Positions 21,495 through 31,120 of a stretch of DNA of 64,000 bases are shown here, in pieces. The notes under the pieces are model-generated. The model was not told the DNA's origin and searched no databases. It saw nothing but the letters and a program-made list of their open reading frames with translations. Made by a program: the position numbers and the translations under genes. The first letter of the stretch is position 1, and each line of letters begins with the position of its first letter. Source of the stretch: Dimorphilus gyrociliatus (Eukaryota; Animalia; Annelida); assembly GCA_904063045.1 (NCBI GenBank), contig CAJFCJ010000006.1, forward strand, positions 1,461,745 through 1,525,744, given 5' to 3'.

Positions 21495-22828
21495 GAGAAT
21501 CGGGTGTTAAAAAGTTATGGGGAACTTTGCGCAACGAATCAAAAAAGAAGTTAATGGAGGAAGATGAGACTATTCCGCGGGAATTAAAGGTTAGTTTCAT
21601 CACAATGTTACCTATTCTCCACAGGTTTTCACAGATGTTTCATAACAGATGGCATATAGCGCTTTCGTTCGGGAATCTCTAACTAAGGATTGGAAACCGG
21701 TTAAGAGAAATTTCTTTAAGAAGGACGACGTGCCACAAATGCTGCAGTTGATCGATACAAGTAGGATGGAACGGACTAACGCTAGGAAATATCGAGTTGG
21801 TTTTCAAATTGTTTACCAACGTCTAATATTTGATGACTTGTCGACGTCTAGGCAGGTCTTATGTTTCGATCGTCCAATATGAACGAAGATAAAAGCAGAG
21901 TCCTGTTGCATAATAAGGATATGACAGAGCACGACAGCGGCGAAGACGGGGTGGCTAGATTTATTCCAGATAATTATGTAAGTATTTTTTATAAGAGCAT
22001 TAACCCTGTTAATTAATTTAATTGATGTTAGACGCCAGAGGATAAACCAGAATATAAAAAGTGGCTTGTCTCAACGGAGGAGGACGATAAAAGTTTTTCA
22101 GTGGAATCCGAATTAAAACTACTGCTGTCATTAGCGAACGAGAGAGACAGAGCCACAGGTGGACGTCCAAAGATTCTACCTTCCATACACTTTCTAACAG
22201 AAAAAGAATCGACAGTCGATGGGGAATTTACCAAGCGTTGGAAAGAGGCAGATGAAAGGAAGAGGCAGGAAAAGCTAGTCAGGTAGAAGAAAATATATGC
22301 CTATTAATTTCGTCACTAATTTCCCAAAGGCGGTTTACACTGAATCGCTAACACAATCTTTGGCATCTTGTCGAATTTAAATATTTATCATCTTCTCGCC
22401 TTAAATGAGTTTTATTTTACTTACAGCCTTCGAAACTCAAACGGAAATACAGATGGAGCTATAGGTGTGTTCAATCAGCGCCCCCTCTCTGTAGAATCAA
22501 ACCGTTCTACAGAATATGAATGGATATTGACTAGGACAAATAGCTTCTTTTAGTCAATGTCGTTCTTTAAGCACTTTATTTCACTTAAATTTTATTTATT
22601 TTTAATGCATGATGAGATTTTTCACGCATGAAAATCACAACAGAAACGAATATTCGTTGCGTGATAACTGCTGAAGGAGATACATCTGAAGAAATCTGGG
22701 AGCCGTTGTCGATGAATGCCTTGATGGAGTATAGTCGACAGAGAAATGTCGCCGGAAGGGGAGGATTTACGCAGGGTTCGATGAAATATTGGAACTCAGC
22801 ACCTCTTCCAGCCATTCATTCGCAATAG
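21495..22828 (+). CDS. Hypothetical protein (about 6 short exons; start unresolved)
   Basis: Phase-consistent exons 21495-21589, 21649-about 21795, about 21854-21977, about 22032-22283, about 22427-22462 and about 22646-22828. They end in IWEPLSMNALMEYSRQRNVAGRGGFTQGSMKYW...*. Confidence 0.55.
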
Positions 22829-22939
22829 AGATGAAGATGATAAGCTTTCTTTTTGAAATATTTTACACATTGAACTGCATGCAGTGTTTATGATAGCCGT
22901 CCAAATCAGAATACACAGTATTAAACTTGTAACAAATGT

Positions 22940-23766
22940 TCATATTGGGCCTGAATTAAAATTCCCATATCGTCGTTTCCAAATTAAACCACAAATCCAA
23001 AGACAAACACAGCTCGCTAAGGCGTTTAGAGCGCTTTCCAAAATAAGATAATCCTTGACGCTTGTGATAATAACATCGCAGCCTGTTACGTTCTCATACT
23101 CGTATGAATTTTGAGGATAATTACAGATACACGTATTCTTAATGAGAACGCATCCTTTATATTTTGCAATACGACCCCCATGTAAACCTGAGTAGACGCT
23201 AGCTACTATTGTTGCTAATGAGCAGAGGAAGCTTGTAGACGTAGAAAGAAACTGCAAAAATAGTTTGAAGAGGCGATTAGTTATTGGATTATTGATTTTT
23301 TGTTGATTAAAAACCTTGGCTAAGCACGATTTGACCGTATGCTTAAATTTTGCAGTTTCTGTAATGCAGTAGAAAATTCCACAAAGGGAAGCGAGTAAAA
23401 GCTATAAAAGATAAATGAAATATGGATGATGTTATGTTACAAACATTTTACTAACCGGGATTCCTGTCCAATAACTAGCATCCCTAAGAAGTATGCTTGA
23501 AGAGACAGTTTGTAAAAATAATCCAATAGCAATAAGGCCAACAGCTAAGGCGAACTGGAAAAATTTAAAGAATAGAACATTTGTTTACACTCAACTTTTT
23601 TACAAAACGATCTTACCTGCATGGCTACCAGGAGAAATTCGATTTTGCACCATTTCGTCTGACAAGATCGTGTCTTGTTAAAATTATGAATATTGTTGCC
23701 TTCTATCTTAGTGGTTTGGTCCACTTGTCCAATTATTAAATTTTCGTAATTGATACGATTCGACAT
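22940..23766 (-). CDS. SSPN: Sarcospan-like tetraspan membrane protein (4 exons)
   Basis: The spliced product FLLVAMQFALAVGLIAIGLFLQTVSSSILLRDASYWTGIP...CICNYP...YENVTGCDVI...LNALASCVCLWICGLIWKRRYGNF matches vertebrate sarcospan as I recall it (LLQLALG...SSSLLVRDTPFWAG...CQC...YRDVTDC...VCLLACFVMWKHRY). Confidence 0.8.
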
Positions 23767-24940
23767 ATTTACGTGTTTTGGTGAAAATTCTTATATCGCG
23801 TAGATTACTAGTGAATGCTAAGAATGATTGAAATGCAGGGGAGTATAGAGCAGATCTGCGTATTTTACTGTTACTATGGATACGGGTAGGCGTAAAAAGA
23901 AAGTCTTTTATATTTCTTGTTTACCTTTCCATTTTCGGGTAAAAATGAGGTTAACGAATAAGTTTCTTTCCTTCTTAAAAGACATTACTAATTATGAAAA
24001 TGAAGCAAAGTAAAGAAAATGGAAGTTTGTTCTCCTTTCACATAGATTGTATTGCTAGGTGGGTGGGACAAAAGTCAACTATCTTTTTATGTTAAATATT
24101 AACTACCTATACGAAGCACATTGTATATTTTTCTGATTCTTTTACCTAATTTCCTGATGCTTTACATTTAGAATATACTTTACTCGTCTTAGGCCTACGA
24201 GTTTTTTTTTTTAATAATGACCAATAGCAGGGAAAAAGTAGCGACAGTTTGTCAGTCATTATACAACAGCTATGCGTGTAGCGTTTTACTGTATCCGGTT
24301 ATTTATAAATGTTAAAAAGGAATAAAAAAAAGGATTTTTAACAAAGATATAAAGGAGTCAATTTAGTTCTTTTGTATTCATATAGCAGATTTAACCCTGA
24401 GTAGTGAATAAAATGCTTAAGTTTGTAAGGATATGTATCCTTCGCACAGTTGAAAATTAATTGATCAGAGTAAAGAAAGAGAAAGTCGTTTCTTCATTCG
24501 TATCTCATGCCAACACATTTGAACGTCGGCACGAAAGACGTATCTTTGATGTCAGAAGATTAGCTAGCCATATTTAGGCTTAATTTAGTATCTTCTTTCG
24601 TTTTCTGTTGTCTTTTATAAGAGAAGTCCTTAAAAGAAACAGATCAGGGTCAGAGAAAGAAAAGGTTTCTTTTATAATTTCCGTGCAATCATACAATCAC
24701 GGCAGATATCAATTGCCCCATCTTTATTATATGACTATAAATAGAAGATTTATCACAAAAAGCAATAGAACGTAGCCGGTTACGTGGTGTTAATTAATGA
24801 AATTATGGGACTGCTCTCGAAATGAAACAGATATGGCAATATTGTTTTGTTATTCGTGTGGTTACTTTTAAAAAAATAAGTAAGCCGCTAGGCGTCTAGG
24901 CGACAATCGCGTCATCCAGTTGATATATACGTTTTTAACG

Positions 24941-25837
24941 ATGAATAACTCAAGCCTTCCATCACCCTCGGATGAGTTCAGCAAGGTTTATTTGAAATAT
25001 CCTCAATTATTTCTCATATTGCTTGGCCTCGTCGGACATTTACTTAGTATTTGGGCGTTTCTCGAAAGGACGTCTAGAAAAGCAGCTTTGTTTAATATTC
25101 TCGCTGCCCAAAGTATTTCTCTCCAGCTCGTCTTCGTTAGCAACTTATTCAATTGGATTTCAGAGTATACTTCCAATAAACTTGTACATAGACCGTTCGC
25201 CTGTCATCTTCATGCTTTTGTTGCGAAATCTGCCTACTTTTCAGCTTTATGCCTATCATTTTATGCTTGCATCGAAAGGTTCTCCTATCTTGTCTATTCT
25301 AAAACGTTCGGAGTCGGAAGAATTAGAATAGCAGTTGTCTTTACAATTATCGTATCCCTAGTCGTCCATTTAAACGTCTCAACAACTTATGGAATTTTCT
25401 ATTCAAAAGAAAGAGCCGACTATTTTTGTTATCAAATGTTAACGAAAATTGAACGACTAGTATTTAATGTTGCCGGTCTACTGTTTGAATTCTTATTAAC
25501 GGATTGTGGAAGAGTTTTTTTATTAGTTAGAATTATTCACAATTCTGATAATACGGACTTTTCTAGGATGATTTATTCTTCAAATATATTCCAGCTCATC
25601 TTCAGTACGCCTCGGCACCTTTTAAGAATCACAGAATTGAAAGATGAACATTTTAAATATTCCTATTTGGAGGTTATTCATACTTCATTCCTGTTAAGCG
25701 TTTCTTGTCATTTCGCCTTTTATTTAGCTACTTCCAAGGATTTTAGGAAAGCTTTGAGGCTCTTCAGAGAACAGACTGAGGGTGATGTTGTTCTAAACAT
25801 AGACTTACCGGACGAAGATCAAAATACGAGTTTCTGA
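24941..25837 (+). CDS. Intronless divergent rhodopsin-like (class A) GPCR, orphan
   Basis: Seven hydrophobic segments; TM1 LGLVGHLLSI; TM3 preceded by a Cys and ending IERF (DRY variant); TM7 SCHFAFYLATSKDFRKAL plus helix 8. Confidence 0.8.
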   Translation: MNNSSLPSPSDEFSKVYLKYPQLFLILLGLVGHLLSIWAFLERTSRKAALFNILAAQSISLQLVFVSNLFNWISEYTSNKLVHRPFACHLHAFVAKSAYFSALCLSFYACIERFSYLVYSKTFGVGRIRIAVVFTIIVSLVVHLNVSTTYGIFYSKERADYFCYQMLTKIERLVFNVAGLLFEFLLTDCGRVFLLVRIIHNSDNTDFSRMIYSSNIFQLIFSTPRHLLRITELKDEHFKYSYLEVIHTSFLLSVSCHFAFYLATSKDFRKALRLFREQTEGDVVLNIDLPDEDQNTSF

Positions 25838-26943: not shown

Positions 26944-28524
26944 AAAAATTCCGGTACTACTAGGAGACCAAAGTATGGATTTTTTTGGAAAGCATTTTAA
27001 CGTCAGTTCAGTAAATGTAAGGAATTAAATCTTTAAATACTTATTTTAAAGTGGAAATTTAAAGGGTTTTTTTTGTATCAAGCTGGAGATATTCCACGAG
27101 AGACAAGTTGATAAATTTGGAAGAGTAACTTGGAAAGGAATCTGTATTAATATGCTAAATGAATTGGCTAAATCGTTTAATTTTACCTATAAATTAACGG
27201 AAGCACCAGATAGAAAATTTGGTTCAGTAGATAAGAATGGAGAGTGGAATGGTTTAGTGCGAATGGTTATAGATAAAGTATTTACTATATGTTTTAATTA
27301 GATATAAAATGTAAATTAATATGTATTTATGTTTTTCTTCCTTTATCCTCTTCTTCAAGAAATCTGATTTTGCGATAGGTAAGCTTACTGTCAATAAGGA
27401 GAGATCGGAAGTAATAGATTATAGCGTTCCTTTTTGGCAAGAAAACTCGGTTATGGTAATGAGAAGAAAAGAATATATAGACTATAGTACTGTCTTTATA
27501 AAACCTTTCTCTTGGCAAGTTTGGCTTTTTATTGGTCTATGCATTCCAATAATTTCTTTCGTATATTCAATTTTCGAGTTTTATTCGGTGAAGAAGAAAG
27601 GAAATATGAAAAAATCTCTATTTTCATTGTTCGCAAGGTCAATTTGGTTAGTATCGGGTGCCCTATTAAAGCAAAGCGGTAATGATGTATTGATAAGAAC
27701 AGGATCGTAGATCAATAGATATTATAGCTCTATTGGATAGCCCTCCCATAGACTTGTTCATTCAGCTAATTTAATTGAATTAAATTGATTAACTGTCATG
27801 GAGGAGTTATAACTTATTTAAAAAGATATCTATTAATCTACGTGTAGGTTTCAAATCGATCATTAGTTGTGTTTGGCTGTTTTCTATAATGATCTGTGCC
27901 ATATATAATGGTAATTTGATAGCGTTCTTTACAAAACCAAAGCCTAATTTAGAGATTTCAACTTTGAGGGATTTGGCCGAACAAAGTAGATTTAGCTATG
28001 GTCTTTTGGAGGCTTCCGCCTTGCATGTACTTTTTCAGGCGTCAACTAATGGCGTTTACAATACCTTATTAAGAAATAGTATAGGCTTTTCAAGGAATCG
28101 AGTACAATCACATGCAGAAGGAATTCAGCGGGCTTTAACTGGAAATTATGTTTATCTATCAGAAAAATCTGGTGTTATACGGTCGCTTTATAACGGTGAC
28201 TGTTTATTAAAAATGGCGGATGAGCAATTTTTCCCATCCTATCAAGCTTTTATATTTGGTAAGGGTTCAAATTATCTTGAAGCATTCAACTCGAAAATAT
28301 TGAAAATGAGGGAAACAGGAATGATAGACAAGTGGAAGGACGAATTCTATCCGAAGGACATTTGTAGTTTAAAGGCAAACAATAATGGCTCATCCGTTGT
28401 GGCCACAATATTGCACTTTGAGGGAGTGTTTTCTCTTTTCTTAACTGGATTAGTATTGGCCAGTTTCATTTTACTGGTAGAGCGTTTATTATTTTGGCGA
28501 AGAATGAACAGAAGGGTAATGTAG
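26944..28524 (+). CDS. Ionotropic receptor / iGluR-like subunit apparently lacking an ATD (5' end unresolved)
   Basis: S1 reads WKGICINMLNELAKSFNFTY...FGSVDKNGEWNGLV and DFAIGKLTVNKERSEVIDYSVPF. M1 reads FIKPFSWQVW, the P-loop SIWLVSGALLKQ, M3 IYNGNLIAFF, S2 LRDLAEQSRFSYG...LKMRETGMIDKWK, and M4 HFEGVFSLF. Confidence 0.9.
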
Positions 28525-28532
28525 CGCCATCT

Positions 28533-31120
28533 TCAGACGTCTCTGTAAGGAAAGAGTTTAGTGTAATATCGTGGGAGGAAATTAAGTATATGTCACAAAA
28601 AAAAAAAAAAATACTGCTGAAAATTAGTGCTTTTCAGTACATATTCGTAGGAGAGTGAGGGGGTGGAGAATGTTGGAAGGCGGTGAAGGAGAAGAATAAG
28701 AGAAATGGGTGGACACAAAAATTACGGACTTGGTACGAAAAAAATGACTTAGTACTAACGAAGCTTCGAGGTGAGAGTCGTGAAGTAAGCGTAGAACTTC
28801 CTTTGGTGATATCTTTCGCTTATGATCGTCGGTATGTAGACTAGCGGGAGTAAAAACGTTTGTTGACGAAATGAACGAGCTGGATGCTAATGAATGAGAT
28901 AACGTTGTTTTATCCTCTTCCCCTTTCCCATTCCATGAATAGCGTTTTTGGATAGCACATTCCGGTTTGGGCGGTTGATTTAAGTCATGAGTAGTACTGG
29001 CAGTCCAATAACGTTTATCTCTGGACAATCGTCGATGGTTTAATTTCGATTTCGTTTCTTCGTCTATGCAGTCCAAATCGGAAGATGAAGAACTGACGGA
29101 TAATCGATCGGTTGCGAAGACATGCCGTAGTTGATCTATCCTTGGTGAAAGTTGTTTGTTCCTGGCTCCACTCACAGTTGCTGCTCTTGACCTGATTTCT
29201 GTTTGTTCCACATGGCCGGATGAGGACGTGTCTAACAACTCCATACTCATACTGACATTATTTGAAAGTCTTTCTGCCGCTTTTTCTTCTAACGCAACCT
29301 GAGATAAAAGTTCTGTGGAACTAACCTTCTCACTAACAGGGTATTCCATAAGGCTAGAGTTTCTCCTCCCACTCCACAATTCTACATATGCTTTTTTGGC
29401 GTTCGTTATATCTTCGTACCATTTACTGTTGTTTGCAGTAAAAGTGTAGACACAATTAACACAACCAAACTCATTAATATATGCTAAAGAGAACATAGTA
29501 TCTTTGAGAAATATAGGCTTAACCAAGTCTAACCTCATGGGTGGCTTGATTACCCTAACTCTACTTTCCGCTTTTTTCGAGCGTTTCGCGACTAGAACGA
29601 GATCGGTGAATAGAAAGAGTATAATTTCTTGCGATTTTACGCTCACGCCTTCTTTCATCTTTAGATATCCTTCTTTGATTAGACGCCTCCTATAGTGTTC
29701 TCCGCAAACCGCCATAGGAGAAGAAATATCATATTTTAAGGCGTCTTGTAAATGAAAATACACTTCTTCCGGATGAGTGTCTATTAAATCGAAACTTTCT
29801 ATTCGTTGCGTAATATTAAGTAATTTGGCCTGTTGATCATGTATTTGTATCTGTTCATTTACTGAACTTACAAAACTCTTAATACGATTTAAAGTCAACC
29901 CTAATTTACGTTTGTCGCACTCATCGTCGGTACATTCCAATAATCTTTGTAGAAGTAAAACGTGCCGTGTTATATGTTGCATAGGACTGCTTAAATAACT
30001 AGCAACATCCAATTTGTTCAAGTTCGTATGACTATTCGCCCAGGTATAGAATTTCTGAAAGGCTGTATTCCTCTCGCGTTCCTCATTGATGTATTCCTTA
30101 CATTTTTCCATTTTAAGATTATATTGATATTCTTCTAAGAATAGATCTCCGAATTCGTACAATTCTTCCAAACTAGCTGAATTAACAGGTCTCTTACTCT
30201 CTCGTATTTTTCTTATAAAAGGCGATATGACGTCATTCCACCTCCTACAGCATTGTACATAGACGTCGTTTAGATTGAAAACGATTTTGTCAATATCAAC
30301 ACCTCCTAATAAATGTTCATTCGTCAAATGTCTTAACGGTCGTACGAATACGTCAACTATAATTTTTAATTTAAGAGCATAGTTCGCCTCGAAGTGTAAA
30401 ATTTCCCACACTACACTTTGCTGCTGGCGTTCGCTCTTTGATAGGCCTTCATCAGATATTACAGCATTCCATTCGGATTCTAATTCGATGGCTCCGGGAT
30501 CAAATTCCAACGATTCGCTACGTTTTGGTAAGCGTTTACCAAATTCAGTAAGGCGTCTGGTAAGGGCATCATCAATCCCCTGAGATCTTATTTTTAATGA
30601 CGGTGAACCTTCGTCGTCTGATTTACGATGCTTGTTGGTCTTTATAAAAAAAAGATAAAAAATTATTTAACTGAACCGAAAGCGTATAGCAAAGTAATAT
30701 AACAGCAGAAATCAATTTCTCAATGAAACAATAAGGAAAAAAGAACTGAAAGAATACTAAAAAAAGGCCAATTAATTAAATATATATAACATATATACTA
30801 TATATATATATACACATTTATATATATATATATACTGTATATATACATATGAATAAATAATTATATATATATATATATATATATATAACCATACGGATTA
30901 TATAATCTATTAAGATAGAGTTTACATTTCTATATTAGAAAAGTCATAAATATTTAAGACGACAATCTAAAACAAAAAATAATAATAGAAAAGAAGCTTT
31001 TCCTACTGTTTTAGGTCTTTCATTAACTTTTTGAACCTTTTTAGACGCCATACTTTCGTCAAAATCAACAAAAAATTGTAAGGCATCTCGCTGTAGTTTA
31101 GCAATATTCGTCGCCGACAT
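28533..31120 (-). CDS. DH-PH Rho guanine nucleotide exchange factor, PLEKHG5/6 (Syx)-like; exons 31120-31007, 30639-28760, 28542-28533
   Basis: DH reads QQSVVWEILHFEANY...PMQHITRHVLLL; PH reads RRLIKEGYLKMK...LFLFTDLVLVAK...IKPPMRLD. A terminal micro-exon gives ...LEASDV*, a class I PDZ ligand like PLEKHG5 SEV. Confidence 0.88.

Follow-up and report, generated by a model that had tools for sequence, protein, structure and literature searches.

The window analysed here is a stretch of 64,000 nucleotides of Dimorphilus gyrociliatus DNA. On its minus strand, at positions 22940-23766 (ATG to stop codon), lies a four-exon gene encoding a four-helix membrane protein of 215 amino acids. The same coordinates had been given in a first-pass annotation of this DNA, which had joined four exons into a protein with four transmembrane (TM) segments and the signature of sarcospan; all of the motifs that it quoted were found. 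A large protein search performed with exon 4 retrieved the database protein P0001 (GenBank CAD5115574.1, UniProt A0A7I8VIQ1), a 215-aa entry listed as 'DgyrCDS4536 [Dimorphilus gyrociliatus]' in a record that carries no functional name. The translations of the four exons are identical, slice by slice, to residues 1-50, 51-83, 84-112 and 113-215 of P0001, and this database protein was used for all full-length analyses.

The features of the gene are collected in Table 1. The motif SSSILLRDASYWTGIP is present in exon 2, and exon 4 contains the cysteine pattern C-x6-C-x-C...C (C146, C153, C155, C170) followed by WKRRY. All three introns are of the GT..AG type and all three are in phase 0. The reading frame of exon 1 opens after a stop codon and no in-frame start was found upstream of 23766, nor does the plus strand of this region contain any frame longer than 66 codons. 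Searching the 77.9-Mb Dimorphilus genome gave one sarcospan match, indicating a single copy.

Table 1. Layout of the Dimorphilus sarcospan gene (positions in the window; features listed in the direction of transcription)
Feature	Position	Strand	Description
Upstream transcribed stretch	23767..24000	-	probably 5' UTR; the 482-nt X3 contig continues for at least 98 nt beyond 24000
Exon 1	23617..23766	-	50 codons: ATG, cytoplasmic N-terminus, cysteines C35 and C40, first half of TM1
Intron 1	23555..23616	-	62 nt, GTAAGA..TTCCAG, phase 0
Exon 2	23456..23554	-	33 codons: second half of TM1, short outer loop with SSSILLRD, YWTGIP
Intron 2	23402..23455	-	54 nt, phase 0, ancestral position ...WxG(I/L)(P/I) / L
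Exon 3	23315..23401	-	87 nt, 29 codons: TM2 and cytoplasmic loop
Intron 3	23252..23314	-	63 nt, phase 0, ancestral position ...K / just before TM3
Exon 4	22940..23251	-	103 codons and TGA stop: TM3, large outer loop, TM4, WKRRY, short tail
3' UTR	22700..22939	-	unspliced; X3 contig continuous from 23251 to 22700 and for 58 nt more

Evidence for expression came from spliced RNA in one Dimorphilus run (X3). A 799-nt contig of this run matched positions 22700-23251, 23315-23401 and 23456-23557 with zero differences. Its joints, 23251 to 23315 and 23401 to 23456, fall exactly as modelled, so that transcription of the gene and splicing of introns 2 and 3 are established to the base. This contig ends 3 nt beyond the acceptor of exon 2, and these 3 nt (CAG) are common to the intron and to the end of exon 1. 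Another X3 contig (482 nt) extends over 23617..24000 and ends exactly at the donor of exon 1, at 23617. The joint between exons 1 and 2 was not seen within any single RNA contig. If spliced and unspliced forms coexist, the two contig ends would correspond to branch points of the de Bruijn graph. The joint is supported independently, since retention of intron 1, the length of which is not a multiple of 3, shifts the frame into a stop codon (ORF 23545..23766), and since exon 1 and the junction align without gap with the contiguous TM1 of other sarcospans. Across the length of exon 4, contigs of X3 and of a second run, X1, were identical. An alternative first exon, suggested by contig depth (exons 2-4, 1078; exon 1, 16.5), was rejected: this contrast is uninformative, as a single mean is given per contig and the deeper contig enters the 3' end of a convergent neighbour. 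Pieces 95-100% identical to positions 22700-23132 (exon 4 and the 3' region) were also recovered from coral and marine metatranscriptomes (runs X1 and X2), indicating that those samples contained D. gyrociliatus or an animal very closely related to it.

The convergent neighbour is represented by a plus-strand frame (22628-22828) whose last position, 22828, lies only 112 nt away from the stop codon of sarcospan (22940). The 3' UTR of sarcospan runs into the end of this gene and, the contigs being strandless, may in part be sequence of the neighbour. One RNA contig being continuous over both genes, their 3' ends probably overlap or abut. On the other side of the sarcospan gene, 1.15 kb upstream of its ATG, a plus-strand open frame of 305 codons (24920-25837) shows a multi-helix, receptor-like hydrophobic pattern; it is divergent from sarcospan and had no Pfam match at E <= 0.01. 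Further along, two plus-strand open frames (27321-28524) contain pieces of an ionotropic glutamate receptor (Lig_chan-Glu_bd, E 4.5e-7; Lig_chan, E 2.4e-6), and a 628-codon minus-strand frame (28624-30510) encodes a RhoGEF domain (E 2.6e-24) and, after it, a PH domain.

We compared P0001 with the 177,635 distinct sequences of the PDB. The only matches were to sarcospan, namely chain 9c3c_n (E 9.1e-17, residues 38-211 aligned with 43-220) and chain 8yt8_S (E 1.4e-15); no CD20, MS4A or Fc-epsilon-RI beta chain of the PDB matched at E <= 10. Exon 4 alone, searched against the same 177,635 sequences, found both of the sarcospan chains and nothing else (E 5.6e-8 and 8.5e-7); exon 2 alone found only sarcospan, at the matching colinear position (E 0.03), and a profile built from 15 sequences of the family again found only sarcospan (E 4e-51). 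Since separate exons match sarcospan and nothing else, with exon 2 in colinear position, the resemblance borne by the four exons is not due to chance. The first-pass annotation had left room for best matches to generic MS4A or TMEM proteins rather than to SSPN; in the PDB, sarcospan was all that was found. Identity with the vertebrate SSPN chains is about 26-27%, and reaches 37-42% with the sarcospans of Owenia and of nemerteans.

The residues that characterise the family are retained. In an alignment of 15 sequences, every one has the four cysteines of the large outer loop (C146, C153, C155 and C170), and conservation reaches at least 90% at W79, G81, P83, W203 and Y207. Dimorphilus keeps all of the invariant and near-invariant positions with the exception of A80T, the neighbour of G81, and both the YW(A/T)GIP and WKxRY motifs are present. 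It likewise has in common with vertebrate SSPN (8yt8_S, 9c3c_n) the four-helix topology, the C-x6-C-x-C...C pattern, the motif SSSxLxRDxxYWxGI and the terminal WKxRY. The Dimorphilus protein differs from its vertebrate counterpart in its shorter N-terminus and in ending seven residues past WKRRY; it lacks the C-terminal tail GLRFYSYSA..P.HP that is common to the other spiralian sarcospans.

Pfam contains no family specific for sarcospan and places these proteins under the CD20-like family PF04103, with a gathering cut-off of 27.9 bits. A rival reading sees the protein as one of the generic members of the four-helix CD20/MS4A-like superfamily, resembling sarcospan without being its orthologue. 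In keeping with this reading, the sole relevant Pfam match of exon 4 is CD20-like (13.7 bits, E 0.068, below the cut-off), and when exon 4 was used in a protein-language atlas search, the clusters recovered were CD20-like or of other four-helix types, all of them below threshold (scores <0.9). Moreover, the sarcospans of Owenia and of vertebrates themselves exceed the cut-off of Pfam CD20 (38.4 bits for the relative P0006 and 41.9 bits for P0036). Full-length P0001, however, had no match to Pfam CD20 at E <= 10. As judged from these profile scores, membership of the Dimorphilus protein in the CD20-like superfamily would hold by transitivity only.

An AlphaFold2 model of the Dimorphilus protein had a mean pLDDT of 85.6. 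It superimposed on sarcospan chain 8yt8_S with a TM score of 0.90 and an rmsd of 1.9 Å over 180 columns (E 3.6e-10), and on chain 9c3c_n with a TM score of 0.88 and an rmsd of 1.9 Å. The next family after sarcospan was Fc-epsilon-RI beta (MS4A2), with markedly weaker values (E 0.02-0.1, TM 0.54-0.69, rmsd above 5 Å). The fold is thereby established as that of sarcospan. In the model, helices span residues 9-67 (of which about 41-67 form TM1), 77-99, 106-141 and 170-207, and three short strands lie at 145-165 in the large outer loop. Hydropathy analysis delimited segments 39-73, 78-100 and 180-204, TM3 being less hydrophobic. The predicted topology is that of sarcospan: four TM helices with both termini cytoplasmic, TM1 and TM2 being joined by a short loop and TM3 and TM4 by a large outer one. 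CD20/MS4A proteins (PF04103, for example MS4A2) have in common with it the four-helix bundle, the cytoplasmic ends and the larger loop between helices 3 and 4; unlike them, the Dimorphilus protein is set apart by its lack of a PDB sequence match to that family, its weaker fold match and its Pfam score below the cut-off.

We then mapped three database sarcospans on their own genomic loci, those of the annelid Owenia, the mollusc Haliotis and the teleost Trichomycterus. All three genes have two phase-0 introns, one after ...WAG(I/L)(P/I) and the other after ...K before TM3, which enclose an exon of 87 nt. Introns 2 and 3 of Dimorphilus and its exon 3 are found at the same residue positions, in the same phase and with the same exon length. 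Intron 1, which splits TM1, is absent at that position from the Owenia, Haliotis and Trichomycterus genes, and is therefore probably a lineage-specific gain. The introns differ greatly in length, from 1.2 to 44 kb in these three species, and kilobases in vertebrate SSPN, against 54-63 nt in Dimorphilus. Gene length is 0.83 kb in Dimorphilus against 5.7 kb in the catfish, 32.4 kb in Owenia and 46.1 kb in Haliotis, so that the Dimorphilus gene is about 40-55 times shorter than the last two. For a gene of three to four exons, this contrast clearly gives the extent of intron shrinkage in the Dimorphilus genome.

An exhaustive protein search among 1.84 billion representatives yielded 41 matches at E <= 0.001. 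Those with a functional name were all called 'sarcospan' or 'sarcospan-like', and the others that were looked up were unnamed or uncharacterised. One of the 41, a 613-aa repeat protein (P0032), was a bacterial false positive and was excluded from the tree. Homologues were found in Annelida (Owenia fusiformis, 'Sarcospan', A0A8S4NMX1), Nemertea (Tubulanus and Lineus, both 'sarcospan-like'), Brachiopoda (Lingula), Mollusca (Haliotis and Babylonia, 'sarcospan-like', as well as Nucella and Candidula), Platyhelminthes (a divergent protein of the schistosome Heterobilharzia), Hemichordata (Glandiceps, 'sarcospan-like'), Cephalochordata (Branchiostoma, 'SSPN'), lamprey, teleost and the scorpion Centruroides sculpturatus (P0075, LOC111636058, 190 aa, 'uncharacterized'). 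In a word search with the family alignment, only 5 of 8000 scored candidates passed, as transmembrane words swamped the candidate list. A word-index protein search with exon 4 came back blank, an outcome set by its length window and word requirement and no sign that relatives are lacking.

The maximum-likelihood tree built from these sequences roughly follows animal phylogeny. It places Dimorphilus within a supported spiralian clade, together with the annotated spiralian sarcospans that have the same two ancestral introns, and apart from the clade formed by the hemichordate, amphioxus and vertebrates. The Dimorphilus branch is long (1.27, against a median of 0.45), much longer than those of the other spiralian sarcospans. 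The PDB queries (exons 2 and 4, P0001 and the profile of the family) reach nothing but sarcospan, without a single CD20 or Fc-epsilon-RI beta chain. The fold is far closer to sarcospan than to MS4A2, sarcospan-specific motifs and cysteines are retained, intron positions are common to the Dimorphilus gene and vertebrate SSPN, the tree roughly resembles animal phylogeny and the gene has a single copy. On these grounds the generic CD20/MS4A reading is largely refuted and we regard it as very improbable. Sequence, fold, motifs and intron positions all support the Dimorphilus gene being a sarcospan orthologue.

In vertebrate muscle, sarcospan belongs to the membrane core within the dystrophin-glycoprotein complex (DGC), where the beta-dystroglycan helix is held between sarcospan and the bundle of beta/gamma/delta-sarcoglycans, an arrangement that stabilises the link from laminin to dystrophin (PMC12750041, PMC13250547). 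We searched the Dimorphilus genome for genes of this complex. Two Sarcoglycan_1 loci encode sarcoglycans of the beta/gamma/delta type. Dystroglycan corresponds to a single open frame of 662 codons (L005:1387-3375, minus strand) with a transmembrane helix, and it ends in PPPYVPP, the C-terminal PPPY being the dystrophin WW-binding motif. EF-hand_3 domains of the dystrophin/dystrobrevin type occur at three loci. The partners needed for the membrane-core role are thus encoded in this genome. The alpha/epsilon-sarcoglycan ectodomain (PF05510, PF20989) was not found in six-frame searches of the genome, a blank that was not validated by control genomes; as this ectodomain went undetected, the Dimorphilus complex may be simplified or different from that of vertebrates, bearing in mind that blanks do not prove absence. 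Prediction of a complex between sarcospan residues 36-215 and the transmembrane segment of Dimorphilus beta-dystroglycan gave a score of 0.00, which speaks neither for nor against binding.

By analogy with vertebrate muscle, Dimorphilus sarcospan would occupy the same place in the membrane core. The beta-dystroglycan helix would then also be held in this annelid between sarcospan and the bundle of beta/gamma/delta-sarcoglycans, and the laminin-dystrophin link would be stabilised in the same way. The vertebrate SSPN chains were solved within the DGC by cryo-EM; membership of the Dimorphilus protein in the complex is putative.

Another reading accepts the orthology and differs on function: in a miniaturised annelid with a streamlined genome, a true sarcospan may have drifted outside the DGC or be losing its function. 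The long branch, the loss of the conserved C-terminal tail and the undetectable alpha/epsilon-sarcoglycan ectodomain are consistent with such a drift, and sarcospan loss is common among animals (PMC4582122). However, nothing interrupts the reading frame, the gene has canonical splice sites and spliced RNA is produced. The invariant and near-invariant positions are kept except for A80T, the model folds onto sarcospan with high confidence, and the genome has genes for dystroglycan, for beta/gamma/delta-type sarcoglycans and of the dystrophin type. We consider drift or loss of function unlikely, though clearly less so than the generic CD20/MS4A reading. The explanation that we favour, with considerable confidence, is that the gene is a single-copy, fast-evolving SSPN orthologue with one additional intron and without the conserved C-terminal tail, whose product, with helices 3 and 4 linked by a large outer loop that cysteines brace, would act in the DGC much as in vertebrates.

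The presence of homologues across invertebrate phyla as well as in vertebrates indicates that the sarcospan family predates vertebrates. The first-pass annotation had reached the same view, and had stated that sarcospan is generally reported missing from Drosophila and C. elegans, on which the literature agrees (PMC3599653, PMC4582122). This evolutionary inference is right but not new, as invertebrate sarcospans have already been published and are named in databases. Adams and Brancaccio (2015) detected sarcospan in a sponge, Oscarella carmela, and in Hydra. They saw none in ctenophores, Trichoplax, other cnidarians, urochordates or fly, and concluded that sarcospan arose after the divergence of ctenophores and that its loss is common (PMC4582122).

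The scorpion protein bears on where such losses took place. Compared with the PDB, P0075 matched nothing but sarcospan below E 0.1 (E 1.8e-9), with one unrelated antiporter chain further down (E 0.27), and a word search with it found only itself and one unnamed sequence of 72% identity (P0034). In the maximum-likelihood tree P0075 and P0034 fall among the gastropods, at the end of a very long branch, a placement that may reflect long-branch attraction or contamination. The existence of a scorpion homologue suggests that the loss of sarcospan occurred inside Ecdysozoa and not at the root of the group. The fuller proposal is that the ecdysozoan ancestor had sarcospan, which survives in at least one chelicerate lineage, while Dimorphilus in parallel may have a pared-down complex, with a tail-less sarcospan and without the alpha/epsilon-sarcoglycan ectodomain; to us this proposal seems evenly balanced between right and wrong. 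Should this ancestor indeed have had sarcospan, later and separate losses would account for the lack of the gene in fly and nematode.

The Dimorphilus gene is an ordinary, hitherto unnamed orthologue of a known family, and it leaves knowledge of the DGC unchanged. Of minor interest are its additional intron and long branch, the loss of the C-terminal tail, the exact conservation of intron positions and the scorpion homologue, which had not been recognised. Through the analysis, a gene model that had gone unnamed in a compact-genome annelid receives a name and a likely role, and the already published picture of sarcospan as an old animal gene that was repeatedly lost gains one data point. Intron positions conserved between annelid, mollusc and teleost provide a clean marker of orthology, which could help to recognise very divergent sarcospans.
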